Positions 42,107 through 64,000 of a stretch of DNA of 64,000 nt are shown here, in pieces. Location of the stretch: positions 37,386,001 to 37,450,000 of the forward strand of contig NC_135763.1 in the NCBI RefSeq assembly GCF_052425735.1. Direction: 5' to 3'. The notes below the pieces were generated by a model. That model made no database searches. It was not told the DNA's origin and worked only from the letters and a program-made list of their open reading frames with translations. The position numbers and the translations under genes were made by a program. This stretch comes from Oculina patagonica (Eukaryota). The first letter of the stretch is position 1, and every line of letters begins with the position of its first letter.

Positions 42107-44262
42107 TATTTAAGCCCATCAGTTAATTAAGTACCATTTAGTTGTTTGAGCAACGAAGCATTCCAATAAGTTAGTTCTTCTGTGCGACGGGTTCGTTTAT
42201 TTACTTTGACCAGGCTTAGCTTAATTCTTGTTTGAACAACACCTTTTGGTCTTTTCCGAAGAGTCCACGTGCAGTGCACGCTGATGGCTGATTCTGAAGG
42301 GCACAGCAGTATAGAGTACACAGTGTAGCACGATACCAAGCTAAATCCTCGTGCATGGTTAAGGCCGTGCACGCGGCTATCCAGAAAAAACGTATTAAAA
42401 AAGTTATCTGCTTTTCCTAGGTCTGCAATTTCTTTGTACATGTCTGCAGCGACTTTGCCTGTGCTTTTATTTTATTGCTCAAAAAGGTGAAAAAATGAAA
42501 CGTGCAAAAAGGATCAACTACGTTCCATTGAATGCACGTGTAACTGCAGACACATTGAGTGACACGTGAGATGTTCAAAGATTTTTTAATGAACAGAACA
42601 ACGCATGCAAGTCACTTTACGAAAGCTTCTATCGCTAAATTGTAGTCGATAGGCAGCACATGGATTCAGTTTCGCACCAACGTTTCCGAATTTTCTTTTC
42701 CGCTCAGTTACATAATAAAGTGCTTATGTGATACGCAATACACTCTTTGGTTACGTAACAAGTCGCGCGAAAATCACATCCTCGCGTGAAAAACGCACGA
42801 GAACACAGCCGACTCCCAAGGCAGGGGCTACGTCACGGCGCTTTTCAGTTTGTTTTCTTTACGGTCAGTACTGAGTAAAAACGCTGACCGCGGACTTCGG
42901 TCTGGGTATAAAAACACTGAATGAAGTATAAAACGCGAGCTACTGACTGCGGACTAGGTGTTAAATACGGACAAGGGTATAACATGCGGACTAAACATAC
43001 AAACTGCTTATAAACGTTAACTGAAGGGAAAATAACAAGAAGCAAGGCTGTAAGCATAAAAGTTGATTAACCTCAACAAAGTTAGGCTTTTTCCCGCAGA
43101 AAGCCTGCTTGTAGGCAACGGCAAAGTTCGTCGGACAGACGGCCAAAACAGTCAAAACAGTCAAAACAGCTAAAAACTTTGTCCAAGTGTGAGAAACTAA
43201 TTCTTTTTTTGTTTCCTTTACTCTAGTCTTCCATTGTTGGAGTTGAAGTGGAGACTCGTTTCAAGACTCAAAATGTTGTTGATTTCATTCAGTAGGCATG
43301 TGAGAATCTGAAAATGAAAACCGGATCAGACATCTTTTCCCTGTACGTTTCTCTTCCGCCAGTAGAATTTTTTAGCCTCTTCATTACATCAAAATTTTGT
43401 TCCTCTCCTTTGGTATTATGGGAGTGTTATAAAATAAGCGAGTGGCGAAACGTGAGAACAAACCTTGTGCTAGTAAGCGAAAGGATGCAAATTTTAGCCA
43501 AAGTGAAACGTGTATGTTTTGTGAAGCCAGACAATAATCCACTCAACAATCGAGTTTGGATTTTGGTTTTGAATCGAGCTGCCGTTTTAACAAGGAATTA
43601 CTGACTCATTTCGAAAATGGAATGTTGAAGAAAAAATGAAAGCAAATTCCTATTTATAATGAATCATTAATTCACTCTTGAACGAAAATTAAACCTTTCA
43701 GTTGTTTTGTCCGTAAGGGCTCCGATCCGAAAGGTAGGTTCAATTGTTTTGACTGTAGGAAACTTTGCCGAGGTAGACTAGCTCGGGGTGAATGCCTACG
43801 AAGTTCAACGGACGACAAAACTTTGAACAAGACGTTTACACTCTCTTCGATAAAAAACAACAACGTATAAATACGAGCCGACAACGATTAACACAAGGTC
43901 CCATAAAGTCGTTGCGTTGCATGCCATCACTTGCGCAGTCTTGGCGCGCAAAATAATTTAATTTATGCTTTACATCCTTGATCGGTTCTCGTTATTTTTA
44001 TCCGTAGTTCACTTTTAAACGCATTTTATATGCTTAGTCCGCACTTTATACCCTTGTCCTGGTCCGCAGTCCGTAGCCCGAATTTTATATCTCAATTCGT
44101 GTTCTACCCTTCGTACGCGTTGCGTGCCCTTGTTTTGAATCATTGGAGACTGGTATCGACATGTGACGACGCACATGACTGATGAGATGCATTGATGCAA
44201 TGCACATCGCATCAGATGGGAATACAGCAATTTCTTCTTCGCTTAACTTGGCTTTACTTCAC

Positions 44263-45348
44263 ATGTTTACAATAAGACGGAGACGCCGATTTCTTTGGCT
44301 AGCACTATGCATTACAGTGATTGCACCTTTAATATATTTCGTCAAGAATATCTTGAACGATTTCACACCAGAAAACATCCAAACTGATCTCAGAAAACCT
44401 CACAGCAATTACGAAATCATTTTGCCTATCACTGAACCAAGCGGATACCTTGAGCAACCTTTATTTCTTTTTGTGATCATTTCATCCTCTCCAAACAAGC
44501 AAGAAAACGCGGAAAGGAGGGCCATGATACGTCAAACTTGGGGAAATTTCAAAAGAACTCACATACGTGGCGATCAACCCTGGAAAATTGTGTTTATGAT
44601 GGGAAAAGCTTCGAGCTCTGAAATGAATAAATCCATCATGGCGGAACACGAGAAATACGGAGACTTGCTAATCGGTGATTACACAGACGGTTATCGAAAT
44701 ATTACCACGAAACTTCTAATGGCATTTCAATGGGCATCAAAAATTAGATGTAATTATATTCTGAAGACGGATGACGATGTTTATATCGATATACCCAAGT
44801 TGATTGAGTGGTTGAACGTTAATGGTGACCCAAGTTCTTTTTACGGAGGAGTTCTATATAGTGGAATCGTAGTGAGAGATGAAACTCATCGTCATTTTGT
44901 TGCTGAGGACGAGCTACCTTTGAATAGATACCCCATGTTTTGTAAAGGGGCCATGTTTGTAGTTTCATGGAGTTTAGTTCCAAAAATGGTCGAGTTATCG
45001 AGAAAGGTGACAAGAATTCCCCCAGACGATGCTTATGTCGGCATTTTAGCGAATCAGCTTGGGATTTATCCAGTGAGAATTGATGGATTTTTTCAAGCCG
45101 GTTGGTTACAGTGGGTTTTCAATTTTGTCAGCATTTGTCAGTTGCGAGATGTTCTAGGAATTGGTGATTCTCTTACTCCAGATGAAGTGAATTATGTTCA
45201 CCAACTTAAAACTTCTTTGTCAAACCGTGAAAGTTTTTACACAGTTTGTATATCGATTCATATGAAGTTTCTTCTTCTATTGTTATTCGTTTGTACTTGT
45301 TTGCTGGTCTGTTGCTACAGAATATGCTGTCGAAGAAAACATTCCTAA
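44263..45348 (+). CDS. GT31 family beta-1,3-galactosyltransferase-like protein, copy A (361 aa)
   Basis: Single exon. N-terminal RRRRR plus TM, then RRAMIRQTWG, EHEKYGDLL, DGYRNITTKLL, ILKTDDDVYI (DxD), YPMFCKGAMF and DDAYVGI. Start placed at 44263 by alignment with copy B; the upstream in-frame ATG at 44182 is not shared. Confidence 0.9.
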   Translation: MFTIRRRRRFLWLALCITVIAPLIYFVKNILNDFTPENIQTDLRKPHSNYEIILPITEPSGYLEQPLFLFVIISSSPNKQENAERRAMIRQTWGNFKRTHIRGDQPWKIVFMMGKASSSEMNKSIMAEHEKYGDLLIGDYTDGYRNITTKLLMAFQWASKIRCNYILKTDDDVYIDIPKLIEWLNVNGDPSSFYGGVLYSGIVVRDETHRHFVAEDELPLNRYPMFCKGAMFVVSWSLVPKMVELSRKVTRIPPDDAYVGILANQLGIYPVRIDGFFQAGWLQWVFNFVSICQLRDVLGIGDSLTPDEVNYVHQLKTSLSNRESFYTVCISIHMKFLLLLLFVCTCLLVCCYRICCRRKHS

Positions 45349-45474
45349 ATTAAATTGAATTAAATTTATTTATTATTTTAATAAAATGAGAAAATTTGAA
45401 TGCAGTTGAAATGTTACAGCTTGTGTGATGGGGGAGGAAAAATTGGAAAAGGTGATGGGAATTAGGGGTGGTGA

Positions 45475-45650
45475 TAGCCTGTTCCAGGCATTCGGTTAGT
45501 TGGGAAGAGGCGCAAGGAACAGCGAGCGAAAAAATGACGAGAGGTCTAAGGCGAGGGGGCGTTCTTCTCCCCACCCCCCTCCCCTAATTTTTTCACTCGC
45601 TTTTTTTTTTTGCACCGCTTTCCAACTAACCGAACGCCTGGAACAGGCAA
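45475..45650. mobile_element. TAG-ended MITE with a 9-bp TSD, absent from the paralogous site
   Basis: TAGCCTGTTCCAGGCATTCGGTTAGTTGG...CCAACTAACCGAACGCCTGGAACAGGCAA is flanked by GGGTGGTGA and GGGTGGTAA. The paralogous site near 52129-52137 has a single GGGTGGTGA. Confidence 0.85.
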
Positions 45651-47064
45651 GGGTGGTAAATTGTCCTTCAAAAAATGCGTATCTGTGTATCTTGCAAACT
45701 TTTAGCCAAATTTCGAATTTTTCTTTGACACCTTCTCAGGATCTCGATTTCATTTGCAAGGTTTAAAAGGTCTTGGCTTGCAGAAAAGATATCAGTCTTG
45801 CTGCCTCCTAAAGTCGTGCATTATCCCTTCCACACCCCTGGAATTGGAAGTCTACAAGAGAGGACAAGGGATTCCCAAGTTGGTGGAAATCCAAGAGAAA
45901 TAGGGAAAAAATTGTTATGTGTAGTTTTTTGCAATGTGCAATCTCAGGAGATATACCCACTCCAAGAGTAGTCTCCTTCACAGCTGTTATTTGGGTCATC
46001 ATGTAACACTTTTCCCCACAAACGTCTAACAGTCGCTTAAACCCAAACCACATTTGTTTTCTTTTGTTTTGACCCCAGTAGCTTTGCACCTTTTGGCAAA
46101 AAAGTGACAGTGGCTTAGAATTATGTGATAGCCAATAGAGCATAACCTGGAGCGTGCAAATTTCCATATATTTGTGACAGCATTTTCACAAGTAGCCAAG
46201 CCTTACCCCACGAAAATTACTGCTTCCAAAGAAGTCACCTACTGCTTTGCAAGGAAATACTGAAATCATCGCTCGAAATGCTGTCAGAACTGCACTTCAG
46301 AGAAAATTCCTTGTATGTGTCCACCATGTTAACTTCCCATCTGGACAAGGTACTGTAGTTACATATCAACAGAAAATCGTAACTAAAAAAAATTAACTTG
46401 TGAAAAATATGCAGGGATGTAGCTAAGAAAAGGCTAAGCCAACTTATCAACCAGCCAGGCTGCCTTTTCTGGCCTTGGCAGCTTTAAAAGTTGACCCAAG
46501 TCATTTTCATGTGAAACTTCAGCCGGATTTACATCCTTTCAGCCAGGGAAATAAGCCGACAGCCAACATCCCTCAAAATGCCGTTTCACAGACAAAGTAT
46601 GGACCGCAGTTGCTTGCTCTGGGTAATGGGCTCATGATGAGCCAAGTCTTGATTGGCTAAACCGGTGAGAGAAGTGTGGTTGAATCTGATCTTGCTGATG
46701 GGTACAAGGGTTATCATGTTTAAAGTTGGTCAAAGTTACTCAACAACTTTACTTCATGTTGATCCTTTCTTAGTGAAAATTTTGGGGTTTCATTTGAACA
46801 AGAGATCATTTAATTAAAACATCTTTTAATACAAGATTCAAACTTGAATATATAAAATAACATTAAATAACTTGACAACTCTGACTTGCTTTTGAACTGA
46901 TAAGTTAAACATGAAGATGCACTTAAGCATAAGTTTACGATTCCAAATATTAATATGACATGGAAAGTAAAATGTTGGAGCCTAGCCCCATTTATAGTAA
47001 ACCTTCATGTATAATGCTTAATAAAATTTGATCTTTTCTTTTGAATTATACAACACAAAGAATG

Positions 47065-48878
47065 TTAGATATCTAAATCATCATCAGGATCATCTTCATC
47101 AAAGTCGTCTGCTTCATCAGGTTGATAGAAGACTTTCCCCTCCCCTGTAGGGTTAACTGTGACCTCGCTGCTTTTCTTCTCTTCATGATACATGTAAGGT
47201 AGTTTGAGGTTGGAGCGAGCTTGGCGTTCATTGTCTGTCAGTTTGAGGTTAAATGTGAGGTTTTGAGTTGGATCAACCTGTGAGAGAATGAAAAGTAACT
47301 TTTAAGTGAAAATTAAATTATTTGATGTATAGTGAAACATGAGGCTTGTGGTGAAATCCAGTTTCTATGACTAGAAGTGGCTAGGATTATTGCTACAGCC
47401 CATGAATGGGATGTTAATCCTTCGCAAGTTACCCAGCCTCAACAATTTTGCCAGGTCTTTTCCAACATTATTATCTGCTGATAACATTAATTTTATAAAT
47501 TTTCTGAGCGAAAAGAGGTACAGTGAGAGTAAAGTGTCTTTGTGCAAGATCCCAACACAACACAATAACCCTGGAGAGGGCTTAAATTAGAACCCCTCCA
47601 CTAAGAGTCTGACACACCAACCACTAGCCCACTGCACCTCTCAAAATAACAAAGCTATTTTTCAGTTTTTAATATTTTTTTTATTATAAATTTTTGTTGG
47701 AAGAGCATGCAGGTTACGTTGTCATAATAAATTATTATGCTCACCTCTTTGACTGCCATTGGTTCACTGTGAGCTGTATAAGAGGAAGCATTCCAATCTT
47801 TTTCTTCATTTTCTATCAGTTCATATTCATCACTGATGGTGGGGAAGCTTTCAACCTTGAACAAGAATTGATTTTGTAATATGTTAATTTTAATTTGACT
47901 TGCCCTACTGGCTTGCAAAAACACAGAAAGACTCCTAAAATATACAGCAGTACTTAACACCCTATAAAAATTCACATTTTTAAAGATATTGTTAAATTTT
48001 TGTCAGTTAAGTTTTAACTTGCAAATATACCTTTCTGATCACTTTTCCAGTTTTCCTTTTGTGAAGAATTTTACACCAACTAACTGATTGATCTGAAAAA
48101 AGTATTTAATACCTAATGAAATTATAAACCAACAACTCATGCAATGTAACATACGTACACTATAAAAACACATTTATTTCTTTTGCAGTGCTAACATTTT
48201 TTGTAAAATATTATCATTATAAAGCAGAGATAAAATTCAACTAATGATATTTTACCAGCATCTTTTGGTTCATTGTCTTGTGTTATCCAAAGTAGAGTTG
48301 AAGCTAGGAAATTGACAGCATTTAACGTCTGATCATCATGAAGATCTGCATGCACCAAACCAACAACCTGAGCAACGTGATAACCTGGCAGGAATAAAAA
48401 TTAAACTATCTCACTGAATGACATCTGTAACTCTTCTCTGCTGGGCAAGGTTAGAAAAATAATATTATACTTAGTAACTCAAAAGTGAAAATGACATATA
48501 GTACTGCAGTATCGATAGTATTTCTTGAATTTTTGTCTGAAGGCCTTATGGAAATATGAGACGGAATAAAATGAAACATGTTCAACAAGTAGATTTGCAT
48601 GGATTTCCTTAATTCACAACTGCCAGCAATGGATACAGAGGTGCTCAAAGTACGGGAGGGAGGGGGGTAGGTTATATATTTCCAGCATAAGGGGAGCCAG
48701 GGGGTCCTGAGTGCATTGCAGTGTAAAACAACTACATGCCATTAACAGTGCATACCTGCCTGTGAGTCCAGAGGGTCGGAATACAGCTGATTAAGTAATG
48801 TACACACTGCTGACGAGGATTTCCATAGCAACAGTCTACTTAGGGAGTTAATTACAACAGCTACTTTTACCACGTTAC
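47065..48878 (-). other. ELP5: Duplicated ELP5 exons 6-10 lacking exons 1-5; open frame, splice sites intact (alternative 3' module or partial duplicate)
   Basis: Exons 48878-48756, 48384-48256, 48092-48031, 47855-47745 and 47277-47065. No stops or frameshifts, one in-frame Pro codon insertion, and the last exon is protein-identical to 53513-53301. Confidence 0.85.
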
Positions 48879-50926
48879 CTGGAAAATACAAAGAAAATAT
48901 GAATTGTATTTATTAATAAACAGCATAAATTAAACTGAATTTAAAATAAAATTTCTTAATTTTAGGATAAATTTAAATTGTGTACATTTCACATAGTATA
49001 TACCTGCCAACTCTCACGCCTTGGGCGTGAGTCTCATGCCTACGAGTTGAAAACTTCGATCTCACGCCAACTCACGCTCACGAACCAATTTCTCACGCCT
49101 AGTCAAAAATGGGAGTTATTACAACCAAAAACGACACATTTTCCAAAAAATGTACCGGTAATCTCCAACCAGTGTGAGAAAATAAAACACCATGTAAAAT
49201 GAGTAAATGGCGATACCTTCCCTGAAATGACAGAGTTTTGAGGAAAAAAGCATTGGGAACGAGGTCGTGTTTTAATAGCAAAACACGTCCACATACTGGC
49301 ATCGGGAGATGTTAGGAACGTCTTCGGAATACTTTGGACAACTTTCTTTTTTTCGTACAACTTTTGCGTTTAGTTTTTATACATTTTTTTCTTGCAAAAT
49401 AAACGTACTACTTGCTAAAGATGGTGAAAATTAAATAAGCGCCCAGCCTCGAATAAGCGCCCACCTCGAATAAGCGCCCACCCTCAGGGTCCAAAAATTT
49501 AATACGCGCCCAGGGCGCTTAATCGAATAAATACGGTAACCTCTTTTCTCGAACACTTTGCAAATGTGAGTTATAGACAGTGGTTGTAGACAGTTTCTGA
49601 ATTAATTATTCATTAATTATTCTATATTAATTATTCTAAATATATTACGAATTAATATTACGTACTGTTTCAGATTTGCACATTTTTGTGTCTAAATTTT
49701 TCCATAGAAAGTGTCCATCAGGGAAAATTAGGGTGGTGTATGTAGGGAATCACACTTTAAAAGCTGATTTCAAATCAAAAACCTCCAACAGCTTACAGAA
49801 TAATGAATTTTATGAGCAAAGGGGGTGGGTCATGTAATTTTCAACCCCGTATCAGGGGTGGGGCAGTCAGTTTTGAGCCAGAAGAAAGGGGTGGGTCACA
49901 AATTTTCAAGCCACCACTTTTCCAACATGTTCCCTCGTGTGTGCTGATAATTTTTGGCTCTTGCAACACGAGTTCTTGAAACATTTTGTCCCTGCGACAT
50001 GTTGCACGAAGTTCAACGAGTTGAACTGTGCAACATGTCGCAGGGACAAAACTGTTGCAAGAATGTTGCAAGAACTCCTGTTACAAGAGCCAAAAATTAT
50101 CAGCACACACGAGGGGTCATGTTGCTGCGACATGTCCCTCAGCCTGGCCACTTTTTTTCTTGTGCGTGTACACATTGTGATTCTGTCACTGCTACATGCC
50201 CCCGCTACACGTCCCTGCTACATGTTCCCTCAGTGTGAAAAACACACGATTTTGTCGCTGCTACAATAATGTCACTGCGATATGTCCCACTTGTGCAGGG
50301 ACCTTTACGTAGGAATTTTTCGCCCCCTTGCCAACCAACTTCAAAGTTAAGGTTTTAATTTTTACAGTAAAAAGATTGGTACATTACCTGTATCATGACA
50401 ATTTACTACTTTTTTGGAGCTTTACCAAAAAAGTTCTACGAGTTTGAAAATAGCGACATGTGGACTTGTCGGCGCCATTTCAGTGTCCGAGCACTTTTTG
50501 CATAGTTCGGATGCGAAACATTTAAAAAGTACAAACACACGTTCACCTGAGGAAATGGGAATATGTTTACACTCAGCAACTATTTTATCGATCCTTGCTC
50601 ATACACTTCGATATGAACAAAAAATATGAACGAAATTCACCGAACTGAAAGAAAAGCTGCCTAAGACGTTTGACCGTAGACTGTCCACAGCCCTCTATTT
50701 TTTCGTGTTTTTTCGATCGATGAGCGCGCGGTGAGAACGGCGAGAGAACTGGACGCCAGCGCAAAACGAAAGAAGCAAATAGTTTGACCGCGTAGAAACC
50801 CTTCGCACGCGTTGCGTACCCTTGTTTTGAATTCTTGGAGACTGGTGACGACACATTTGACGCAACGACTGATACACAGCAAATGCAGCAATTTCTTCTT
50901 TCACATGGCGTTAGCCTTTACTTCAC

Positions 50927-51997
50927 ATGTTTACAATAAGACGGAGACGCCGATTACTTCGGCTAGCACTATGCATTACAGTGATTGCACCTTTAATATA
51001 TTTCGTCAAGAATATCTTGGGCGATTTCACACCACAAAACATCCAGACGGATCTCAGAAAACCTCACAGCAATTACGAAATCATTTTGCCTATCACCGAA
51101 CCAAGCGGATACCTTGAGCAACCTTTATTTCTTTTTGTGATCATTTCATCCTCTCCAAACAAGCAAGAAAACGCGGAAAGGAGGGCCATGATACGTCAAA
51201 CTTGGGGAAATTTCAAAAGAACTCACATACGTGGCGATCAACCCTGGAAAATTGTGTTTATGATGGGAAGAGCGTCCAGCGCTGAAATGAATAAATCCAT
51301 CATGGCGGAACACGAGAAATATGGAGACTTGCTAATCGGTGATTACACTGACGGTTATCGAAATATTACCACGAAACTTCTAATGGCATTTCAGTGGGCA
51401 TCAAAAATTAGATGTAATTATATTCTGAAGACGGATGACGATGTTTATATTGATATACCCAAGTTGATAGAATGGTTGAACGTTAATGGTGACCCAAGTT
51501 CTTTTTACGGAGGAGTTCTATATAGTGGAATTGTAGTGAGAGATGAAACTCATCGTCATTTTGTTGCTGAGGACGAGCTACCTTTGGATAGATACCCCAT
51601 GTTTTGTACAGGGGCCATGTTTGTAGTTTCATGGAGTTTAGTTCCAAAAATGGTCGAGTTATCGAGAAAGGTGACAAGAATTCCCCCTGATGATGCTTAT
51701 GTCGGCATTTTAGCGAATCAGCTTGGGATTTATCCAGTGAGAATTGATGGATTTTTTCAAGCCGATTGGTTACAGTGGGTTTTCAATTTTGTCAGCATTT
51801 GTCAGTTGCGAGATGTTCTAGGAATTGGTGATTCTCTTACTCCAGATCAAGTGAAATATGTTCACCAACTTAAGACTTCTTTGTCAAACCGTGAAAGTTT
51901 TTACACAGTTTGTATATCGATTCATATGAAGTTTCTTCTTCTATTGTTATTCGTTTGTACTTGTTTGCTGGTCTGTTGCTACAGAATATGCTGTTGA
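50927..51997 (+). CDS. GT31 family beta-1,3-galactosyltransferase-like protein, copy B (356 aa)
   Basis: About 97% identical to copy A. A CGA>TGA change removes the final RRKHS. Confidence 0.9.
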   Translation: MFTIRRRRRLLRLALCITVIAPLIYFVKNILGDFTPQNIQTDLRKPHSNYEIILPITEPSGYLEQPLFLFVIISSSPNKQENAERRAMIRQTWGNFKRTHIRGDQPWKIVFMMGRASSAEMNKSIMAEHEKYGDLLIGDYTDGYRNITTKLLMAFQWASKIRCNYILKTDDDVYIDIPKLIEWLNVNGDPSSFYGGVLYSGIVVRDETHRHFVAEDELPLDRYPMFCTGAMFVVSWSLVPKMVELSRKVTRIPPDDAYVGILANQLGIYPVRIDGFFQADWLQWVFNFVSICQLRDVLGIGDSLTPDQVKYVHQLKTSLSNRESFYTVCISIHMKFLLLLLFVCTCLLVCCYRICC

Positions 51998-53300
51998 AGA
52001 AAACATTCCTAAATTAAATTGAATTAAATTTATTTATTATTTAAATAAAATGAGAAAATTTGAATGCAGTTGAAATGTTACAGCTTGTGTGACAGGGGAG
52101 AAAGTTGGGAAAAGGTGATGGGAATTAGGGGTGGTGAATGGTCCTTCAAGAAATGTGTGTCTCGCAAACTTTTAGCCAAATTTTAGGGGTCTCGTCATCT
52201 CGAATTTTTCTTTGATGCCTTCTCGGAGTCTCAATTTCTTTTGCAAGGCTAAAAAGGTCTTGGGCTTGCAGAAAAGATATCTATCTCAATGTCTCACAAA
52301 GTCCACATTTACCATTCGACACCCCTGGAACTGGAAGTCTAGAAGAGAGGATGAGGACAAGGGATTCCCAAGTTTTTGGAAATCCGAGAGAAATAAGGAA
52401 AAAATTATTATTTGTAATTTTTCACAATGTGAAGCTCCAGAAAATATCAATACCCACCCCATGGAAGGTCAATGGAAATTCTGAGGGGGTTGGTCTCAAA
52501 AGCCAAAATTTTAAAAGGTCTGTATGGGGCCTAACTGGAATTTCCAGAGGGATGGCAGGGATTCAAACCAAAAAACCTTCTGTGGGAGGGGTACGGATAT
52601 TTTCTGGAACAACACAATGTGCAATCTCAGGAAATATACCCACTGCAAAGGTAGTCTCCTTCAAACCTGTTATTTGGGTCATCATGCAACACTTTTCCCC
52701 ACAAACGTCTAATCTTGGCAATAGTAACAACAGAGCAGTTCTCACAATGTCTACAAGTAGGTCATGCTTGTACCGGCATGAGTTATTGTTCTTAAGTCAG
52801 TTAATTTTTGTGTCATGTTATGTTTGCGACACTTATTTTTTTTTTTGAAATTATCACAAAATTAATGAGTTGCGAAAATTTCATGTAATAAGGTACCTTA
52901 GATCTTGCTGAAGTATACATGTGAGAGTTGGTCAAAGTTACTTAATATCTGCATTGCTTTTTGCATAACAGCATCCAACTGTAACAACTTTAATTAAGTT
53001 GATCCTTTTCCGTAAAGATTCTGGGTTTTATTTTTAAAACTTCTTTTAAATACAATATTCAAACTTGAATATATAAAATAACATTAATAAAATAACTTGA
53101 CAACTCTGACCTTGCTTTTAAACTAATAAGTGGTAAACATGAAGATGCACTTAAGCAAAAGTTTATACTTCCAAAGTAATGCAATGGCATGGAAAGTAAA
53201 ATGTAGGAGCCTAGCCCCATTTATAGTAAACCTTCATGTATATTAAATGCTTGATAAAACTTATTTATCTTTTCTTTTGAATTATTCAAGACAAAAAATG

Positions 53301-56300
53301 CTAGATATCTAAATCATCATCAGGATCATCTTCATCAAAATCGTCTGCTTCATCAGGCTGGTAGAAGACTTTCCCCTCCCCGGTAGGGTTAACTGTGACC
53401 TCGCTGCTTTTCTTCTCTTCATGATACATGTAAGGTAGTTTGAGGTTGGAGCGAGCTTGGCGTTCATTGTCTGTCAGTTTGAGGTTGAATGTGAGGTTTT
53501 GGGTTGGATCAACCTGTGAGAGTATGAAGAAAAAAATTAAGTTAAAATCATATCCTTCTTTTTGGTTTTTTAGTGACTTGTGAGGCTTGTGGTGAACTCC
53601 AGTTTCTGTCACTAGAAACCATGAAGTGGCTAGGATTATTTTGGGATGGTAATCCTTCACAAGTTGTAACGCAGCCTCAACAATTTCGCCAGTCTTTCCA
53701 ACAGCATTATTTGTTTCAGCTTGGGATTTATCCAGTGAATATTGAGGTGAATACAGTAAAAACCCACGATTAAGAACCTATTGTTTTTCAGAATAGCCTC
53801 AACAGGTTCTTACATAAATGGTTATTAAACACAATATTAGGCTAATTAGGTTCTTAATAGGTTCCTAATTTCTGTGAAAAATAATTCAATGTTATTAAAT
53901 AGAGATTTTAGTGGTATTCGGCCTTTTTCTGGTATAAAATTTGCATTACATTGCATCTGGGGTAATAAGGCTTCTAGGTTATATATCTCCAAGGAGGATC
54001 CGGAATGTCGACTTATCATATTTTCCCAAGAGTAAACATAAATAATCAATTTTAGAAAATAAGAACCTGTTTTCAAATTTTAGGCTAAATAGGTTCTTAT
54101 AAAAATGGTATCTAATTTGCAAAATTTTAGCCTAACAGGTTCTTAAATGTTAGGTTCTTACTTGCGGGTTTTTACTGCATTATAAATTTCTAAGCACAGA
54201 GACGTACAGTGAGAGTAAAGTGTCTTTGTGTAAGAACACAACACAACCCTGGAGAGGGCTCAACCTACAACTCCTCTGTTGTGAGTCTGACACACTAACA
54301 ATGAAGACAATGCGCCTCCCATTATAACAAAAAAAAATATTTAATTATATTACTGTGGGTATTATTTTCTATTATTTGCTCACCTCTTTGACTGCCATAG
54401 GTTCGCTGTGAGCAGTATAAGAGGAAGCATTCCAATCTTTTTCTTCATTTTCTATCAGTTCATATTCATCACTGATGGTGAAGCTTTCAACCTTGAACAA
54501 GAAATGATTTTGTAATATGTCACTTTTAATTTGACTTGCCCTACTGGCTTGCAGAAACACAGAAAGACTCCTAAAATATACAGCAGTACTTAACACCCTA
54601 TAAAAATTCACATTTTTGAAGATATCATTAAATCTTTGTCAGTTTAGTTTTAACTTGCAAATATACCTTTCTGATCACTTTTCCAGTTTTTCTTTTGTGA
54701 AGAATTTTACACCAACTGACTGATTGATCTGAAAAAAGTATTTAATATGAAATTATAAACAAACTGTCAATTCATGCAATGTATCATACACTATATAATC
54801 ACATTTATTTCTTTTGCAGTGCCAATATTTTTTGTAAAAATATTATAATTATAAAGCAGAGATAAAATTCAACTAATGATATTTTACCAGCATCTTTTTG
54901 TTGATTGTTTTGTGTTATCCAAAGTAGAGTTGAAGCAAGGTAATTGACGACATTTAATGTCTGATCATCATGAAGATCTGCATGCACCAAACCAACAACC
55001 TGAACAACTTGATACCCTGGCAGGGAATAGAAATTAATCAATCTCACAAATTGACATCTGTCTCTTCTCGGCTGGGTAAGAATATTTTTGTCTGAAGGCC
55101 TAATAGAAATACCACATTCACTGTTTTCACTGTTCCCATAATACACCTTGTTAACCCCCCTCCCCCACCCCCAGCCCCCCCCAATTTTTTTTCATAAGCA
55201 ATGACAACGTACAATCGTTCCCAGAGAAATTGAAAACAATGCTTATGCAAAAATATTGGGGGGTAAACAAAGTATATATGGGATCGTGAAAAAAGCGAAA
55301 TATGGAACAAAATGAAATACACTCACAAGTGGGATTGCATGGATTTCCTGAATGCACTACTGCCAGCGGTGGATACAGAGGTGCTCAAAATAGGAGGGGG
55401 GGGGGGGTAGATTATAATTATTTCAAGTATAAGGGGAGCAAGGAGGTCCTGAGTGCATTGCAGTGTAGAAAGGCTGCCGAGAATTTAGCCAGCATGCAAT
55501 TTAGCCAACAACAGTGCATACCTGCCTGTGAGTCCAGAGGGTTGGAATACAGCTGATTTAGTAATGTACACACTGCTGTCGAGGATTTCCACAGCAACAG
55601 TCTGCTCAAAGAATTGATTACAACAGCTATTTTTACCACATTACCTGGAAAATACAAAGAAAGAATTGATTCTATGTATAAAACACAAACTGTAGGACTT
55701 AAAACAAACTCCTTTCCCCAAAACGCTACTAGGAGAGGTCTGCAATCTGTTAAATTTGACATTAGAGCACACATTTCTGCCCTCTGATGTCTAAAGAACA
55801 ACCCCAAAAGCATGGTAAAACAGGATTGTCTGAACTTCCAGGTAATGCATTGTCACAAATCGTCTACAAACACATGAGTAGGGGGATGTCAGGGCTGTAA
55901 CTGACAAGAGGCAAGACCAGGCACTTGCCTCACCTAGATTTGAACCAAAAATTAAAAAAAAAAAACGTTTAGTTGTATGGGAAGATAAGTCCCAGTTGAA
56001 CAAGATTGATTTTGTCTCAAGTAATAACCTATGAAAAATGTTAAAAAAACATGTTTCAATGCTTCTAGACTTCAAAGTTTTCTAGGGGTACACCCCAACC
56101 CCCCAAGCAAAATCTTGCCTCATCTATGCTTAAAGTCTGGCTATGGCCCTGGATGTGCCCCCCTGGGGGCAGGGGGTATATGCTCAGTTTGGAGTAGGAT
56201 GCCCCCTCCCTCACACATTTCAAAATGCTCTGCTGCCTCATAAACTTACATAAGACAACAAAAGTTGTACATTTTACACAATCAAGTGCACTGAGTGCCA

Positions 56301-58680
56301 CTCTCACCAGAATTGCTGTTTTGTGAGGAACTTGCCATGTTATTCTTCACTACTTGGGCTAAATTAGAGTTATGATGAATAACGGAAACACGACTGTTGT
56401 CACATTCATTTCTGTGGAAAAAGAAAACATCATTTAAATCTCTGTAGAGCAGAGCAAACAACTTCCTCACACCTATATTGGCAATTCAAAAAAAATAACA
56501 GAAACGTACTAAAAATATTGACTAGGAACTTTTATTATGGGATAATTTACTCGACAATGTAGAAAAGGATTAATAGTATTGATTTTTATTTACATTTGAA
56601 ATAACACTTTCTTTTTTTTCAGATAGTGAAGTAATTCACAAAGAAAAAAAAATTAAAAATTCTTAGTTACCTTGTAAGATCCCATCCAAGAGGATCAGTG
56701 AAACCATCATAGCAGAAAATTCTGTAAAGTATATGTAAGAGAATTGAAGTTATTGATAAGAATATCAATCTGGGCCGGTAAGTAACTGAGATAAATGAAA
56801 CAGAAATTCAGTGTAAACATAATGGAACATGGAATTGTATTGTATTATTTATGTCTGCAAACCTTTCTCTCAAATGCGGGTCAAATGCACCAATAAACTG
56901 ATCCGGTGACACATCCCAGAGTATGGCATGTACAAAGTCAACGCTGAAAAGTAAAAACAATAAAGATGGCAGAAATAAGTAAGAGAACTTTATACACTTT
57001 CTTACATTTAATTTTATATCCACCCTCCTTCCTCCCCCCTCCACCACAGATAAGATTTTCTGAATGGGCTTTGAAAGTGACTGTCATAATTTTCTGAGGG
57101 GGTAGCCCTGTTGGCATTCTTTTATCTCTCAAATATTTCTGAAGGGGTTATGTATCAGTCAATTCCAAGCGAGATCATCCCCCCAAGCATTTGACTGCTA
57201 CTGAGGGCCAGATAGTGGGGAATTTGATCGAACAAAAGCTCAGATGATCGGGCATTTGGTTACGTTAATGTTAAGTAGTTTCAAACTATCCTTTCCTATT
57301 AAAATTGGCTGATTACACTCCTTCTTATAAAAGCGTGAACACTAAAAAATATGTCTGGAATGTTTGTGTTTAGCCAATCACAAGCGAGAACTTCAGACCG
57401 CATAAACCACAAACAATAAATGGGTTTCCATCGGTCACGGAGCAACTTAAGTTCATATTTTGTTTCAGGATACACGCTCTGTCTTTTTCAGGAATTTAAA
57501 GAACTGCTATTCTTTCGTATCGAGGGCCACATCCAGAACATGGTTTCAGGGATTTTTGAAAGAAAGAAAAAAGGACAGTTTCTCTAGCGACGTTATATGA
57601 CATGGTTCAGCGCATGCAGTTTGTTGTAGACACGTCTAGACATAAGATGTAAACACGATATTAAAACCGAATATAAAATACAAAATTGTGGAGTTTTCGT
57701 TACTGATTGTAAATCTTTTCGGTAGAACAAGGGATTCAATTTATTTTGGCAAACGATTTCAACCCTTAAACAATCAGAGGTTCCGTGATCGTAAGACTGC
57801 AAACTGCAAAGGCTCCAGACGAAAATTATTCAAAATGTTGGCGTGATTGGTGCAAAGTAAACACCTCAATCGCTCAATCGTTTGATTTTCGCTTTTCCTT
57901 CCCGCTATCGTTTCGCTGTTATCGAAGAAACGAACCATCCTTCTATCAGTGTATCAAATACGAATTGCAGATACGAATTCGTTACAATTTTTGAAAATTG
58001 GCGGCAACTGGGGCAAATCGTAGCGTCGGGCGCATCGGTTTTTCATTTTTTTTATAAAAAAATCACTCAAACATATTCTTCAGTAGGGCAGTGAATGTTC
58101 TCAAAAAGGAAGGAATTACAGTTAGTGTTTACTTGTAAATTGGAGCGAAACGAGAACCGAATATCGTTCCGTGACCAATGACCCATTCGTTGTTTGTGGT
58201 TTCTGCGGTCTGAAGTTCTCGCATGTGATTGGTTAAAACACAAAGAACATTCCAGACATATTTTAAGTGTTCACGCTTTAATAAGAAGCGGTGTAATAGG
58301 GTATGAGTGTCCGTTTAAACCTAGTGTTAACGAGAAAACTCAACTCACAATAAAAATGGATAATAAAAATGGAATGGCCCTTAGAATTGTCTAAAAGTTA
58401 TAAAAACTAAATTAGTTTTCTGCATTTACCTTTCAAGCAGCGATTTGACGAAACAGCATAACAAAGGTTTACCATTTTCGTTTACATTGTCTGCAAAAAG
58501 ACGTATTTATATGCAAAACATATTTTTGCAAAATCTGGAGGGTTGGAAAGGTTCAGAGGAAAACTTTACCTTATTGAAACCAGACAGGATCTAATTCCCA
58601 GAAATGTGCCAAGAAAACTTACCATGGACGAGAATGAGATGAGAATTTTCTTTTCCATTGACAATATCTCCCAAAATCAT
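53301..58680 (-). CDS. ELP5: Elongator complex protein 5 (329 aa, 10 exons)
   Basis: Exons 58680-58623, 58490-58430, 56943-56863, 56721-56671, 56411-56308, 55644-55522, 55016-54888, 54728-54667, 54491-54384 and 53513-53301; 990 nt in frame. Motifs YDGFTDPLGW, INSLSRLLL, GLVHADLH and VDPTQNLTFNLKLT...FYQPDEADDFDEDDPDDDLDI*. Confidence 0.93.
53754..54177. mobile_element. Tc1/mariner-type MITE in ELP5 intron 9 (absent from the duplicate)
   Basis: TIR CAGTAAAAACCCACGATTAAGAACCT / AGGTTCTTACTTGCGGGTTTTTACTG with internal AGGTTCTTA repeats and TA on the left flank. Confidence 0.8.
57312..58296. mobile_element. ~1-kb element with ~130-bp terminal inverted repeats, nested in a GGGCCATTCC-family MITE in ELP5 intron 2
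   Basis: TTACACTCCTTCTTATAAAAGCGTGAACAC...GGTCACGGA is mirrored by TCCGTGACC...GTGTTCACGCTTTAATAAGAAGCGGTGTAA. Host element halves are at about 57005-57150 and 58320-58380. Confidence 0.75.
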
Positions 58681-58913
58681 TTTAGTTATCGTGTATTTAT
58701 GGAGGAAAGAGAAGATTCATCTTACATCCGCATGGACCGCCATATTGGCCGCGCAAAAATACCGAAACTGGGTCGAGCCAGTGAAAACGGACAAATTGGT
58801 CAGCGGAAGTGTTACCTAGCAACAACGCGTCCATGACAACAATTTTCATTGAAACGAAACAAATATTTCTCATTACAGTTCTAATTGCTTTTTCCATAAC
58901 TTCGAGAACAAGA
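58681..58913. promoter_or_regulatory. Bidirectional ELP5/CFAP107 promoter with an RFX X-box
   Basis: 233 bp between ATGs. X-box GTTACCTAGCAAC at 58811-58823, a second X-box-like GTCCATGACAAC at 58829-58840, ETS-type GCGGAAGT at 58803, and ATTGG boxes at 58744 and 58795. Confidence 0.8.
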
Positions 58914-61900
58914 ATGGAAGAACAAGCTATTGCGAAATGGAATCAACCGGGCTGGAGAATAGAACAAAGGTATAACACCGATGTATTGATTGGAAATTGG
59001 AACGAAGAGAGACGAGTGGTAAGTTAAAGTTTTATTATAATAAAATCACTTTCGGAACATTCCGTGGCTATGTAATAATTTCCTTCTTGCACAATGAAAA
59101 CCAACAAGCTGTGCATAATTAGTCTGGAAAACTTATCTTGTGAATCTTTAGCGTCAAGTAATCACTCAGTCAGGTTGTTTTAATAAAGAGGGTTTCTATC
59201 CATAATTTTCGTAAACGTTCCGTCAAATGGCACACGAATAGTTTCACTAATTTTCATGTCTGTTGTTGCAAGTGTTTAAAATGCCGATCATTGATTTATT
59301 ATTCTGTACACAGCTGTAGCAAAAGTTAACAATTTCTTTGGGCACATAGCCAGCTCCGGCGCTGAGGTTTTTGTTTTATTAAAATTCCTTGTTTCTGATT
59401 TTCCCACAGTCCGTTGACAAAATATGAGATATTTAATTTCCTTTACAATTGTTTGTAAGCATTTTTGTCTGCCTGACCAAAGTTTTTATCGTGCTCTTGT
59501 TAAAAGATCGTTTTAAAAAGAAGGGAAATTTGACAATAATTATGTATCATTTTCTTATTATGAAATCATGGAGCATTTTTAAAACTTTTGTTCAGAAATT
59601 TTTTAAAACATTTTCACACCAGGAAGTAAAGAATTTCTCAAGATGTGGACTACACTGTAGCATTCCATCCCTGCATACTGCATCCTTCATAAGGGATATG
59701 GAATCAAGTGGTGTATTATTTCTAAAAATAATTGGATGAAGCAACTAGGCAAATTGCTACGGCTACTAGATGGGATGCTATTTCATTGTTGGTTAACCCC
59801 TGCATTTTTTTCAGCATGCTTTTTCAATTCGCTGGTACCCATCTAATCTATACTCCTAGGTGGAGGGAGGTACTCTGAGATTAGAACCAAGATCTCATCA
59901 TCCAACCTTCTACCTTACCATTCCAATTTCTGATCTTCTTTTTTCTTTTTCTTTTTGCTACTAGTTTGAGCGTGGCTCATCCAAATTTAACAGTACTCAC
60001 CGAGTAGATTTTAAGAACTATGGAAAATATCTCCCCGATGTCACAACCAGGAGAAAAGCACTTCAACAACACAATGTAAGTAATTACTTGGTTATCAACC
60101 TTGCACAGTTTTCTGTGCTATGGAATTAATTAGATTTAATCCACTGCAAAACCATTGAAACTGTGAGTCATGTATATTTCCCAAGATGATTACTCACCAG
60201 CTTAATGCAAAACTGTGCACAAATAAAGCTGATGTCAAACTGATCACTAGACAAAAGGCCAGATGAATACAGTGGAACCCTGTCATGCGACCACCATCAG
60301 CCCCAGGGGGGTGGGGATGTGCCACTCAGGTCTCCAAAGTAGCACCCCATTTTAGAAAGAATTTGCATTCAAAATGATACTCGAACTAGAAAGAGGTCAA
60401 TTTTTTAATTTAAGCCATTTTGGTTGCTGATAAGTTAAAACGTTTGTGCGTTCAAAATATTCCATTCTAGAAATCGTCTCTAAACTTCTTGATCAGGAGC
60501 CCAAAATCACGACCCCGTTAGGCAGCACATACCCATATAGGTATTTTTGGGGAGAACCAGATGAATACAGTGGATCCCTGTTACGCGACCACCATCAGCA
60601 CACCAGAACCTGGTCATTAGGTCAGATTCTAATTTAATTTTTGATTGGTCTTACAGGGTCTAGGAAGGGAGTTCATTTTTTCTCACCACCAAAAAGCTTA
60701 TGAAGGCAACAGAATATCATGGTATGATCAGCAATTTAATAAACGTGAGATCATTGAGTCTAGGCTGCCTCCGCTGAGGAGCTGGGACAGTCAGAAGCTG
60801 GCCTGGGCACCAGAAAAATCTGATTACCCTATTCAAGGTTTGTCAATTTACTATGCATTCATTTTACAAAAGGTTTTCTTTTACCATCACATTCAGTAGC
60901 CATCCAAGAATACTGCACAGTAATCAGTCGTCACTGGAGCTACTTCTCTCTCTTAGCCGGCAAAGGCTGTGTACAAGAAACAAGTGGCTCTGGGGACACA
61001 ATTTGATTGGGCAGGCTTGATTTTAACAAAGGGAGCTTCAAATCTACAGCCAATCAAAACAATTTACCACTCAAACTCTTACAAACTCTTGTTAGCCTGC
61101 GTGGCTGGCGTTCGTAAGAGCAGGGAGAAGGGGACGCAGGCTAAACTCTCGTATGACAAAGAGAAATTCAAAACGGTTCATTTGATTGGCTTCCTTTTGT
61201 TAAAATCCAGCCAATCAAGTCATGTGTCCCCAAGGCCACTTGTTTCTCGTGCACAGGGTTCACCGGCTAAGAGAAAATAGCCGCTATGGGGATGAGAATG
61301 CGCAGTTATTACCAAGGTCCTCATTTTGACTGTCCTTATTGCTTTTGCAGGAGAGGAGGGGAGGTGATGAAAAAAGATACATACACAAGTTTCACCTCAT
61401 ACAAACACACCTAATTTCTCCTTAAAATATCAGCAAATTTTGCAAAGCACTATACAGATCATGAGCAAAAGAATTAAGCAATCCTCAATGAAATTGTTGA
61501 CTGCAAATTTACACTACCTATACAGAAGGAAATATTTTGTTAACCAGTAATAAATATTTTCAATTTCAACATCTTGGCTCCTCAAACTCATTAATAATTC
61601 AACAAGTTAAAACAAAAACATGACCAAGAAGGTTTGGATGCCCAGTCTTAACTAGCATTGATTTTTAAGATTTTATTTCTCCATTAACTTCGTAGTTTTC
61701 GCTTCGATTGAGAAGATACATCAAACACTCAAGACAGTGTTTCATCTGCTATCCAAACACCTTGAATTTTGTCAATAGATCACTGCATGTCATATTTTTA
61801 GCTCTCTTCTCGGTGTTAGGAAATCCATATGGAACATTGTCGCTTGTGTTTGATATACAGTAAAACCCCGGTAACTCGAACTCGGATAACTCGAACAACC

Positions 61901-62727
61901 CCGCTTACTCGAACAAACTTCCATTTCCCTTGGATTTGACCTCACTTTTCAGTCATTTTTACTTGGTTAACTCGAACTCGGATAACTCGAAAACCCCGCT
62001 AACTTGAACTAAATTTCGTTTCCCTTGATCAAAATTTGGGCCAAATTTACCCCGATAACTCAAATTCCGGTTCCTGCAACTCACCGCGGTTGCCCATTGA
62101 TTAGAACAACAAAACAGATCACGTATTTGACAGCCTTTTTCCACTCTTATCCTAAGAATTTATGATCGTGTTAGAGTTTCTGACGCGATAAGTTTAATTT
62201 GCACTGTGCTGAATACTGAAATGCTGTAAAATCAGTTAACTATCAATTATTAACTTGGCAAATTAAATATTCAATCTACCCCGATAACTCGAAACCGCGC
62301 TAACTCGAATGGTTTTTCGTTTCCCTTCAGAGTTCGAGTTACCGGGGTTCTACTGTATTACTTTAAGGGTAAATTGTTATCAGGAATAACACAGTTTTGT
62401 TTTCATTTGTCTCTAGGACATCCCACAAACTATGGACTTTTACAAAAACTTCAGGAAAAGTGGAAAAAAGAGGCAGCTATGGAGAGCCTGGGGACAAATG
62501 TAACGACATACAATCTGTCGTACAACCCTCATCCAAGGGAATCTTTTTCTTACCAACACCATGCCCCATCTAAGAGTATCTCATGTCACTTTCATCCTCA
62601 TCGTGTCAACAAAGATCTGCATTTACGCGGGAAACAGATGAACAGTGTTCCAGAATTTCCACCGACTCTTGCTGTTCCACACAATGTACCACCTGATTTT
62701 CCACAATCAACAATTCTCATGATTTAA
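58914..62727 (+). CDS. CFAP107: Cilia- and flagella-associated protein 107 (C1orf158 homolog), 235 aa, 4 exons
   Basis: Exons 58914-59018, 59965-60075, 60657-60837 and 62417-62727. Motifs PGWRIEQRYNTDVLIGNWNEERR, ISWYDQQFN and LPPLRSWDSQKLAWAPEKSDYPIQGHPTNYGL. Confidence 0.88.
60940..61285. repeat. Foldback element with a 51-bp TAG...CTA MITE (61093-61143, 9-bp TSD) inserted at its centre
   Basis: Outer arms CTCTTAGCCGG...AGAAACAAGTGGC / GCCACTTGTTTCT...CCGGCTAAGAG. Inner TAGCCTGCGT...ACGCAGGCTA flanked by AACTCTTGT and AACTCTCGT. Confidence 0.75.
61858..62355. mobile_element. Tc1/mariner-type MITE in CFAP107 intron 3
   Basis: TIR CAGTAAAACCCCGGTAACTCGAAC / GTTCGAGTTACCGGGGTTCTACTG with TA flanks and internal TAACTCGAA repeats. 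Confidence 0.85.
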
Positions 62728-63671
62728 AATAATACTGATTGGTGGTATTGATTGCTTAAAAGGAACTTTTCCCTCACTCCACTTCACTTCACGTTCCCAG
62801 ATTCTAAATAACCTCGACAAGTTTATAAAAGTTAAAAAATGATTTTTATTCTCTTTTTGTAAAGAGGTATTCATTGTATCACATACACCTATGATAACTT
62901 ACAGCTTGTTTTCCCCAGATAACCAAAAAAAGATTAAGAAATCTCTGAAAGCGTCATAAAAAAATTTCCCAAGAAGTTCATCTTCATGTCTTTTAATGTG
63001 TACCAAACAAATAATGCTGTGAACTAGCAGTGCTCTAGTTGTTCCACCATGCAGGCAGTTTTCAGCCAACAAGCTGTAAGCTTATAGTTGGTGACCCAAA
63101 ACACATCAATTTTGACACCCATAGCTGATCACTTAAAAGTACATGTATGTGGCAACTATAAACTACCGGTAAATCATGAAAAGCTAGTAATAACAGTCCC
63201 CTAGTTTAAGAAAGGCAGCTCTGTGAATTCTACTAACAATAAAGAAAACACCATTGCCAGCATCTAGCTATCTAGTAGTATCTCAGTTAACAAATAAAAC
63301 TTCAAACTAAAAAAAAAAGAAAATGAGATAAGCCATTTTTTCCTTGAGATAAAACATTTACAACCTGAATATCTGAAACTATTATGAAGTCACAGTAATG
63401 TAGTTATAGAGAGTGAAGATTAACTGGCAAGCTTGTTTCAAAAGAAAAGTGTGAGATATCAATGGAACTAACTTCTGTAAAAAGCAGTTTGAAAGAAGTC
63501 AATTCATGACTTGTGCAATTGAGATAAATTTGTAATATATTTTTAAAAAATAAAGTTATTGTACTTTTTTACATACAAGGTTATGGCATTTTAATTTAAT
63601 TCTTATAGGTTACCATTTAAATAGTAAATTATTAATCTATCCCTGTACCCTCAGCATCCTTTATCATTGTG

Positions 63672-63917
63672 TTACTTGGTTGGTTCTTTTTTCCTAGTCA
63701 CTGGTAATTTTCTATTTCCAGGCCGATGCAGTTGTTGTGGATTATTCTCTGGAACTGCCATTAGTAGAACTTGTTCTAGGATTATTGCAGTCAGCCCCCA
63801 TATCCGGTGAGGTCCATTAAGAAATAGCGGTAAGACAGCTTGTGATGTAAACTTGGTATACCCGCGATTGATTGGATTACAGACATGCTCCAGAGTAAGC
63901 GTAAAGACAGATTCCAC
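63672..63917 (-). CDS. NUDT8: Last exon of the Nudix hydrolase NUDT8 (CoA diphosphatase type); the rest lies beyond the window
   Basis: Acceptor CTGCAG|GTG at 63917, then VESVFTLTLEHVCNPINRGYTKF...LPLFLNGPHRIWGLTAIILEQVL, matching the NUDT8 C-terminus. Confidence 0.8.
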   Translation of the reverse strand: MESVFTLTLEHVCNPINRGYTKFTSQAVLPLFLNGPHRIWGLTAIILEQVLLMAVPENNPQQLHRPGNRKLPVTRKKEPTK

Positions 63918-64000
63918 CTGCAGACATGGCAAATGATTATGGAATCTCAGATGACGCTAAAGCGACTCAGATTTGTCCTTGTTACTGTTTTTTCGAAATA

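Follow-up and report, generated by a model that had tools for sequence, protein, structure and literature searches.

The stretch examined here, 64,000 nucleotides (nt) of Oculina patagonica (NCBI RefSeq assembly GCF_052425735.1, contig NC_135763.1, positions 37,386,001 to 37,450,000 of the forward strand), is referred to below as the window, and positions are counted from its first letter. Within it, one ELP5 gene on the minus strand appears to possess two alternative 3′ halves, the left of which is spliced into messenger RNA (mRNA); a probability of about 0.8 was assigned to this reading. The original prediction, made from the letters of the window, held that the left block is functional and is joined from the donor of exon 5 as an alternative five-exon 3′ half. 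This is supported by the selection acting on the block, by its spliced mRNA, by a 742-nt extension of one transcript contig and by the RefSeq protein XP_078374171.1.

The underlying duplication was detected by repeat finding and by BLAST of the window against itself. Direct tandem copies (44106-48896 and 50798-55662) were matched as a series of local alignments, which bears out the claim that a block consisting of a GT31 glycosyltransferase gene and ELP5 exons 10-6 occurs twice in tandem. In each unit, a GT31 gene without introns lies on the plus strand, and ELP5 exons 6-10, the last five coding ones, run towards it on the minus strand. Exons 1-5 were mapped once only and, as predicted, lie with the promoter beside the right copy. 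The units are as follows.

44106-48896: left duplicated unit, with GT31 copy A, ELP5 exons 10-6 and 18 nt of intron 5; defined by local alignments to 50798-55662
50798-55662: right duplicated unit, with GT31 copy B and ELP5 exons 10-6, running on into intron 5 and exons 5-1; defined by local alignments

The GT31 gene copies are 96.5% identical, and aligned non-coding or mixed segments 80-93%. Globally aligned ELP5 exons range from 90% identity (exon 6) up to 97% (exons 8-10). Homology stops 18-30 nt upstream of the exon 6 acceptor, in agreement with the predicted end about 20 nt into intron 5, past the polypyrimidine tract; the last 16 nt of this tract, which end the two acceptors, are the same in both copies. 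The 1.9 kb spacer between the units (48897-50797) has no counterpart in the other copy. The window, part of a chromosome-scale contig, has no runs of N, and no further copy of the left block was found elsewhere in the 529 Mb assembly.

Public sequencing runs were ranked by 31-mers, and three RNA-like runs (X7, X3 and X6, from three studies and under three organism labels) as well as one DNA run (X17) were mapped to positions 46801-52800. Joints and contig pieces reported below are the best-supported ones listed in this region; exon 5 lies outside it. The ELP5 exons, derived from the sequence, are given here with the transcript joints that touch them.

48756-48878, minus strand: left exon 6; distal acceptor AG at 48880-48879; RNA contigs of X7, X3 and X6 joined from 48754 to 48382
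48256-48384, minus strand: left exon 7; bears 7 of the 10 amino-acid differences; 0 other letters in the RNA contigs
48031-48092, minus strand: left exon 8; joint from 48256 to 48092 in X7, X3 and X6
47745-47855, minus strand: left exon 9; extra CCC codon at about 47842-47844, polymorphic
47065-47277, minus strand: coding part of left exon 10; stop TAA at 47067-47065; PF10483 match; joint from 47743 to 47275 in three RNA runs
46801-47064, minus strand: left 3′ untranslated region (UTR); ATTAAA hexamers at 46830-46825 and 46814-46809, 235 and 251 nt past the stop
55522-55644, minus strand: right exon 6; proximal acceptor
54888-55016, minus strand: right exon 7; used in the coding comparison
54667-54728, minus strand: right exon 8; used in the coding comparison
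54384-54491, minus strand: right exon 9; used in the coding comparison
53301-53513, minus strand: coding part of right exon 10; stop TAG at 53303-53301; PF10483 match; AATAAA 269 nt downstream, at 53032-53027
56308-56411, minus strand: exon 5; shared donor G/GTGAGA after 56308, phase 1
56671-56721, minus strand: exon 4
56863-56943, minus strand: exon 3
58430-58490, minus strand: exon 2
58623-58680, minus strand: coding part of exon 1; ATG at 58680; head-to-head with CFAP107, whose first exon is near 58840

Exons 6-10 measure 123, 129, 62, 111 (left) or 108 (right) and 213 nt and have the same phases in both copies on the same strand. In either copy, the eight internal splice sites are all AG/GT and the reading frame stays open, which confirmed, on exon sets derived from the sequence, that the left copy keeps every GT/AG and the frame.

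The spliced coding sequences of exons 6-10 were compared between left and right, and dN/dS (omega, replacement over silent divergence) was estimated by NG86. Between the halves, 24 synonymous and 10 non-synonymous changes were counted, and left exon 9 has one CCC codon more than the right; the hand count of the original prediction (about 24 silent and about 10 replacement changes plus an in-frame codon) was thus exact. Exon 10 carries 6 silent changes and a stop TAA versus TAG, exons 8 and 9 silent substitutions only, and the replacements fall in exon 7 (7 of 10) and exon 6 (3 of 10). The predicted distribution, with seven silent differences in exon 10 including the stop, purely silent ones in exons 8-9 and seven of ten amino-acid changes in exon 7, matched throughout. 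The estimates were dS 0.206, dN 0.020 and omega 0.10. From 133.5 silent and 496.5 replacement sites, 79% replacements are expected under neutrality, and the binomial probability of 10 or fewer replacements among 34 changes is 9e-10. Silent divergence lies in the neutral range (the difference is 5-12% between introns that align well and about 15-20% between non-coding segments in the local alignments); therefore, the deficit lies in the replacements.

A pairwise ratio cannot tell which copy is constrained, and the changes were therefore polarised with orthologues of exons 6-10 rebuilt from the Orbicella faveolata and Pocillopora verrucosa loci. The left branch bears 11 silent and 4 replacement changes (binomial P=2e-5 versus neutrality, omega about 0.10), the right branch 13 silent and 6 replacement changes (P=1e-5, omega about 0.12). 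By these counts, both halves have been under purifying selection of similar strength since their separation, and the claim of such selection on the headless copy was upheld with two outgroups. Constraint on the left copy is visible within the population too, because the left allele of X7 varies in the 3′ UTR (at least 17 sites in 256 nt against the reference, mostly private and not right-copy letters) and scarcely in the coding sequence (about 2 sites in about 560 nt, one silent in exon 10 and the other in exon 6).

Left-block words reached 0.18-0.24 in the RNA-like runs, clearly above the maximum of 0.07-0.11 that transcripts of the right copy could account for on their own; a value of 0.31 would correspond to left exons covered in full. 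X7, X3 and X6 each yielded one contig that was spliced across left exons 10-9-8-7-6 and carried left-copy letters; the originally proposed check for such letters in spliced reads was therefore positive in all three, with the joints missing in X17. The joints (47275/47743, 48092/48256 and 48382/48754) coincide exactly with the derived exon borders, and the skipped ends read CT..AC, that is GT..AG on the minus strand. All four left introns were seen as joints at a depth of 40-150 in the three RNA runs, with 0-1 other letters in exons 6, 7 and 9, and the depth of the intron bins was zero in X7 and X3. At the 3′ end, an X7 contig spans 46809-47275 and continues past the end of the examined region. 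Since DNA run X17 covers the left introns with none of the spliced joints there, the spliced form is RNA and not a retrocopy. A processed pseudogene was likewise ruled out: the genomic left copy keeps introns 6-9, and the spliced form is absent from X17.

Upstream of left exon 6 (48879), the X3 contig (record 9, 1369 nt) extends for another 742 nt and the X7 contig for 168 nt. Among the pieces listed, none of these upstream parts fell on the spacer or on GT31 copy B (for X3, none on 48880-52800); likewise, the joints listed for the three RNA runs include none that leads from 48879 into the spacer. Within the scope of these listings, this speaks strongly, if not fully, against a separate promoter there. 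The RNA contig alignment runs one base (G) beyond the start of left exon 6, as exon 5 would supply. None of the three RNA contigs has the CCC codon, and one of the two DNA contigs of X17 lacks it as well; the codon is thus polymorphic, belonging to the reference allele, and not fixed. In X3 and X7, the left-type contigs cross the branch point between exons 5 and 6 without a break, at a depth of 117-150, a hint that the distal cassette is the major one in these samples. Use of the right cassette rests on its constraint (13 silent/6 replacement) and on the RefSeq/GenBank model, the 31-mer shares of the right half being confounded by repeat words. A junction 30-mer made degenerate for both cassettes gave 0 matches in JGI metagenome contigs.

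Database proteins were reached with the 70 residues of exon 10 as query against protein representatives, which led to full-length coral ELP5 and, by homology search, to the cluster. The ELP5 proteins of the window are identical to NCBI entries of Oculina patagonica, and the 90% cluster has only three NCBI members. XP_078374171.1 (P0258; ‘elongator complex protein 5-like isoform X1’, 330 amino acids, aa) corresponds letter for letter to exons 1-5 followed by the left half, with the extra proline. XP_078374172.1/KAL9971346.1 (P0154, 329 aa) equals exons 1-5 plus the right half. KAL9971345.1 (P0257, ACROYT_G023858, 235 aa) joins the left half to a first exon of 23 residues that is placed in the spacer. 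The two isoforms originally proposed are therefore exactly those already modelled in RefSeq. No Logan-derived Oculina ELP5 protein was found in the 90% cluster, and no paper describing the two-half arrangement of Oculina ELP5 was found in the literature.

Both isoforms match PF10483 (ELP5/Iki1) over their full length (P0258 with 84.4 bits over residues 3-295, P0154 with 84.2 bits; gathering cutoff 22.5), and orthologues across Metazoa are named ELP5. The ten amino-acid differences are all conservative (V/I, S/T, D/N, H/Q, A/V twice, F/Y, D/N, E/Q and P/Q). A phmmer search of isoform X1 against PDB sequences gave no match at E≤0.001.

The GT31 copies and the spacer, which lie between and beside the ELP5 halves, were annotated as follows (PF01762, Galactosyl_T; gathering cutoff 23).

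44263-45348, plus strand: GT31 galactosyltransferase copy A; PF01762 E=4e-45, 154.5 bits; ancestral upstream side
50927-51997, plus strand: GT31 copy B; intact open reading frame of 356 aa; PF01762 E=6e-45, 153.9 bits; transposon sequence on its upstream side
48897-50797: spacer of interspersed repeats; DNA contig depth 190 to 357,000 versus about 20-35 where single-copy; over 5000 first-look candidates across the genome

GT31 copy B lies antisense within the 7.4 kb intron of the left-half isoform. Copies A and B differ with dS 0.069, dN 0.014 and omega 0.21. The GT31 contig of X3 has copy-A letters at 16 of the 18 sites listed and a depth of 206, and B-type RNA contigs reach a depth of only 8-15; copy A is the well-expressed one. 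At their 3′ ends (45334-45351 in A, 51983-52000 in B), copy A reads CGA versus the stop TGA of copy B and gains five C-terminal residues, RRKHS, after the Cys-rich tail. In the spacer, two interspersed repeat families (48989-49345 and 49536-49925) recur many times in the genome at 88-96% identity; the bin with the depth of 357,000 is 49401-49600, which lies between the two and partly overlaps them. An inverted repeat occupies 49923-50124.

Divergence is uneven along the unit, with a dS of 0.07 in GT31, about 0.15 in ELP5 exons 8-10 and about 0.3 in exons 6-7, and this pattern suggests that some gene conversion may have followed the duplication. As a separate observation, a GT31 B contig of X17 has copy-A letters at two diagnostic sites only (51046 and 51097), and one left-ELP5 allele in X17 is without the CCC codon (47842-47844), like the right copy; variants common to both copies suggest ongoing gene conversion.

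Several points weigh against one gene with two 3′ halves in use. The RefSeq isoform models are computational predictions. In the RNA contigs, the junction of exon 5 with left exon 6 (56308 to 48878) is one that we infer, the single base G being the sole direct hint of it. The left-type contigs that run unbroken in X3 and X7 mean that the right half may be rarely used in those samples. Gene conversion complicates the dating, and the excess of silent changes is not explained by it.

Very unlikely is a false tandem duplication, in which two divergent haplotypes were joined in the assembly within the repeat-rich spacer and the left mRNA and isoform X1 represent the other ELP5 allele. The whole spacer is high-copy repeat that short-read contigs cannot bridge, the RNA contigs and the split alignment from 56308 to 48878 would be expected under such an error as well, and Orbicella faveolata demonstrates that the same locus can be falsely duplicated in an assembly. 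However, the window has no N runs, and the Oculina copies are 80-96% identical with many indels, unlike the Orbicella artefacts (98.6-100%, at N gaps). A silent divergence of 0.2 is also far above known coral heterozygosity. DNA run X17 contains two left-copy alleles (with and without CCC, at depths of 17.5 and 20.8) together with B-type GT31 contigs at a depth of 14-33 (33.3 where there is a single contig). Because both are present at about diploid dose, the left block and GT31 B are not alleles of each other, and the uncollapsed haplotype that the original prediction had kept as an alternative is contradicted by left and right blocks that are both at about diploid dose in this run. X7 and X6 also carry left-half as well as B-type GT31 contigs, and left-copy words amount to 0.68-0.81 in nine DNA runs (six samples) and 0.40-0.47 in five further runs. 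The other alternative named at the outset, a recent duplication joining old alleles, is unlikely and is not needed.

A replacement, in which the left cassette has taken over as the principal or sole 3′ half while the right one is turning, with GT31 B, into intronic debris, is quite unlikely. It would fit the X3 and X7 left contigs that stay unbroken at the branch point, which suggests few competing right-type k-mers, and the weak expression of GT31 B relative to GT31 A; yet the right branch (P=1e-5) speaks for constraint over most of the time since duplication, and the splice sites, frame and AATAAA signal of the right half are intact. Highly improbable is an independent gene that starts from its own promoter and first exon in the spacer and encodes a truncated C-terminal half of ELP5, as in KAL9971345.1. 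The submitter annotation does have this model, whose first 23 residues map to about 49920-49990, but this exon sits inside the transposon inverted repeat. No joint from 48879 to the spacer was listed in the three RNA runs, although the four left introns were recovered at good depth there, and the X3 contig continues upstream without any piece listed on 48880-52800. Moreover, an ELP5 without its first 119 residues would lose about one third of the PF10483 domain. The first exon of KAL9971345.1 is probably an ab initio artefact.

For the single ELP5 gene with two 3′ cassettes, the following course of events is proposed. In the Oculina lineage, a tandem duplication would have copied 4.8 kb, beginning about 130 bp ahead of the GT31 start codon and reaching into the last approximately 20 nt of ELP5 intron 5. 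Given these segment ends, each gene would have been left with one complete and one truncated copy: GT31 A would have kept the ancestral upstream side and GT31 B would have come to lie behind transposons, the right ELP5 half would have stayed next to exons 1-5, and the left half would have been without promoter and 5′ exons. Transposons would have come to fill the duplication junction, and the left half would have been retained as a second 3′ terminal cassette of the single ELP5 gene.

Transcription would start from one promoter, common with the head-to-head CFAP107. On the proximal route, the exon 5 donor (after 56308) would be spliced to 55644 and the transcript would end at the proximal poly(A) signal, giving the 329 aa protein XP_078374172.1. 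On the distal route, the polymerase would pass the proximal poly(A) site and run 7.4 kb antisense across GT31 B and the spacer, exon 5 would be spliced to 48878, and the 330/329 aa isoform X1 would result. Since the two acceptors share identical final 16 nt, the choice of cassette is presumably a kinetic competition between proximal splicing and polyadenylation on the one hand and read-through on the other. No convincing docking/selector RNA pairing was found between intron 5 and the spacer; one AU-rich 17-nt pair (49368-49384 and 55674-55690, 82% complementary) was judged to be a chance match. As no more than 10 positions, all conservative and encoded by exons 6-7, distinguish the proteins, the two cassettes likely provide near-equivalent ELP5 with different 3′ UTRs and not two functions. 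Because the left isoform needs antisense transcription through GT31 B, a regulated choice (by tissue, life stage, symbiotic state or stress) coupled antagonistically to GT31 B can be imagined, a two-gene toggle with 3′ UTRs that give different mRNA stability or translation; such regulation is considered unlikely.

Pocillopora verrucosa and Porites lutea have a single ELP5, in the order DSBA-NUDT8-CFAP107-ELP5 with GT31 converging on the latter, and the Oculina window shows the same gene order. The Oculina halves are alike at 200 of 210 residues, and each compares with Orbicella at about 174 of 208. Since the two species have a single ELP5 and the halves are closer to each other than to Orbicella, the duplication is specific to the Oculina lineage. 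The search for the same arrangement in relatives, which had been suggested with the original prediction, was run; it returned single ELP5 genes in Pocillopora and Porites and, in Orbicella, look-alikes that are artefacts. There, the extra ELP5-like genes (218 aa) and a second GT31 were considered as conservation and rejected, the copies being 98.6%, 99.96% and 100% identical and starting or ending at N gaps. On Orbicella faveolata MZGG01000224.1 (L010:3336-22380; also L001), the 3′ part of ELP5 occurs three times and GT31 twice, and NCBI annotates the artefact copies as separate ‘elongator complex protein 5-like’ genes (XP_020626424.1 and XP_020626429.1); they look like textbook false duplications. 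Among transcript-derived clusters of other corals, no convincing protein pairs with an identical N-terminal and a divergent C-terminal half were found.

Pocillopora verrucosa has a second GT31-like sequence about 4 kb beyond the annotated GT31 (L008:21369-22420), which is not called as a gene. It consists of two pieces (21369-21758 and 21764-22420) with no ELP5 fragment beside it, and may be a frameshifted tandem copy. On the other side of ELP5 in the window, CFAP107 (58780-62740) stands head-to-head with it; about 160 nt separate the first exon of CFAP107 from the ATG of ELP5, and because of this distance the promoter is probably bidirectional. NUDT8 (63672-64000) follows CFAP107, as in Pocillopora, Porites and Orbicella.

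The locus would offer a clean, young example of a promoterless partial duplicate that escapes decay because its parent gene immediately takes it up as an alternative 3′ terminal cassette. C-terminal tandem-exon substitutions are ancient in most documented cases; at this locus an early stage would be seen, at which the proteins from the two cassettes are still nearly the same. The gene affected encodes a subunit of Elongator, a core tRNA-modification complex, and is normally single-copy and invariant in structure. For annotation, the lesson would be that the 235 aa GenBank ‘gene’ is mis-modelled and the two-isoform RefSeq model is right, and that the Orbicella faveolata parallel is not to be cited as conservation.

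Clusters of 3′ tandem cassettes are known from Drosophila PGRP-LC (x/y/a), CG42235 and Pip (PMC6191721), and among human tandem duplicated exon substitutions 77 of 236 swap C-terminal regions, mostly with conservative changes (PMC9741552). As in the 3′ cassette clusters, each Oculina ELP5 cassette ends in a stop codon and poly(A) signal of its own, one donor upstream would serve either cassette (as the RefSeq models of Oculina have it), and the isoforms are the same except for a homologous C-terminal region with mostly conservative residue changes. Unlike in the known clusters, each Oculina cassette comprises five exons and accounts for two thirds of the protein, the two products hardly differ, and the duplicated unit includes an intact opposite-strand GT31 copy that lies inside the alternative intron. 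The human C-terminal events are mostly ancient, whereas the ELP5 duplication is young and lineage-specific. With the internal mutually exclusive exons of Dscam1, tropomyosin and myosin heavy chain, the ELP5 cassettes share an origin by tandem duplication, conserved frame and splice phase, and constraint on both copies; however, they are terminal, and polyadenylation and the stop codon would make them exclusive, in place of steric or RNA-structure rules. The left copy resembles truncated duplicates that decay as pseudogenes in being a headless segmental tandem copy without promoter and 5′ exons, but is not decaying: its splice sites are intact, omega along the left branch is about 0.1, and its mRNA is spliced. 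The ELP5 locus of Oculina is thus probably a young case of a known gene architecture, the 3′ tandem cassette cluster, and not a new mechanism.

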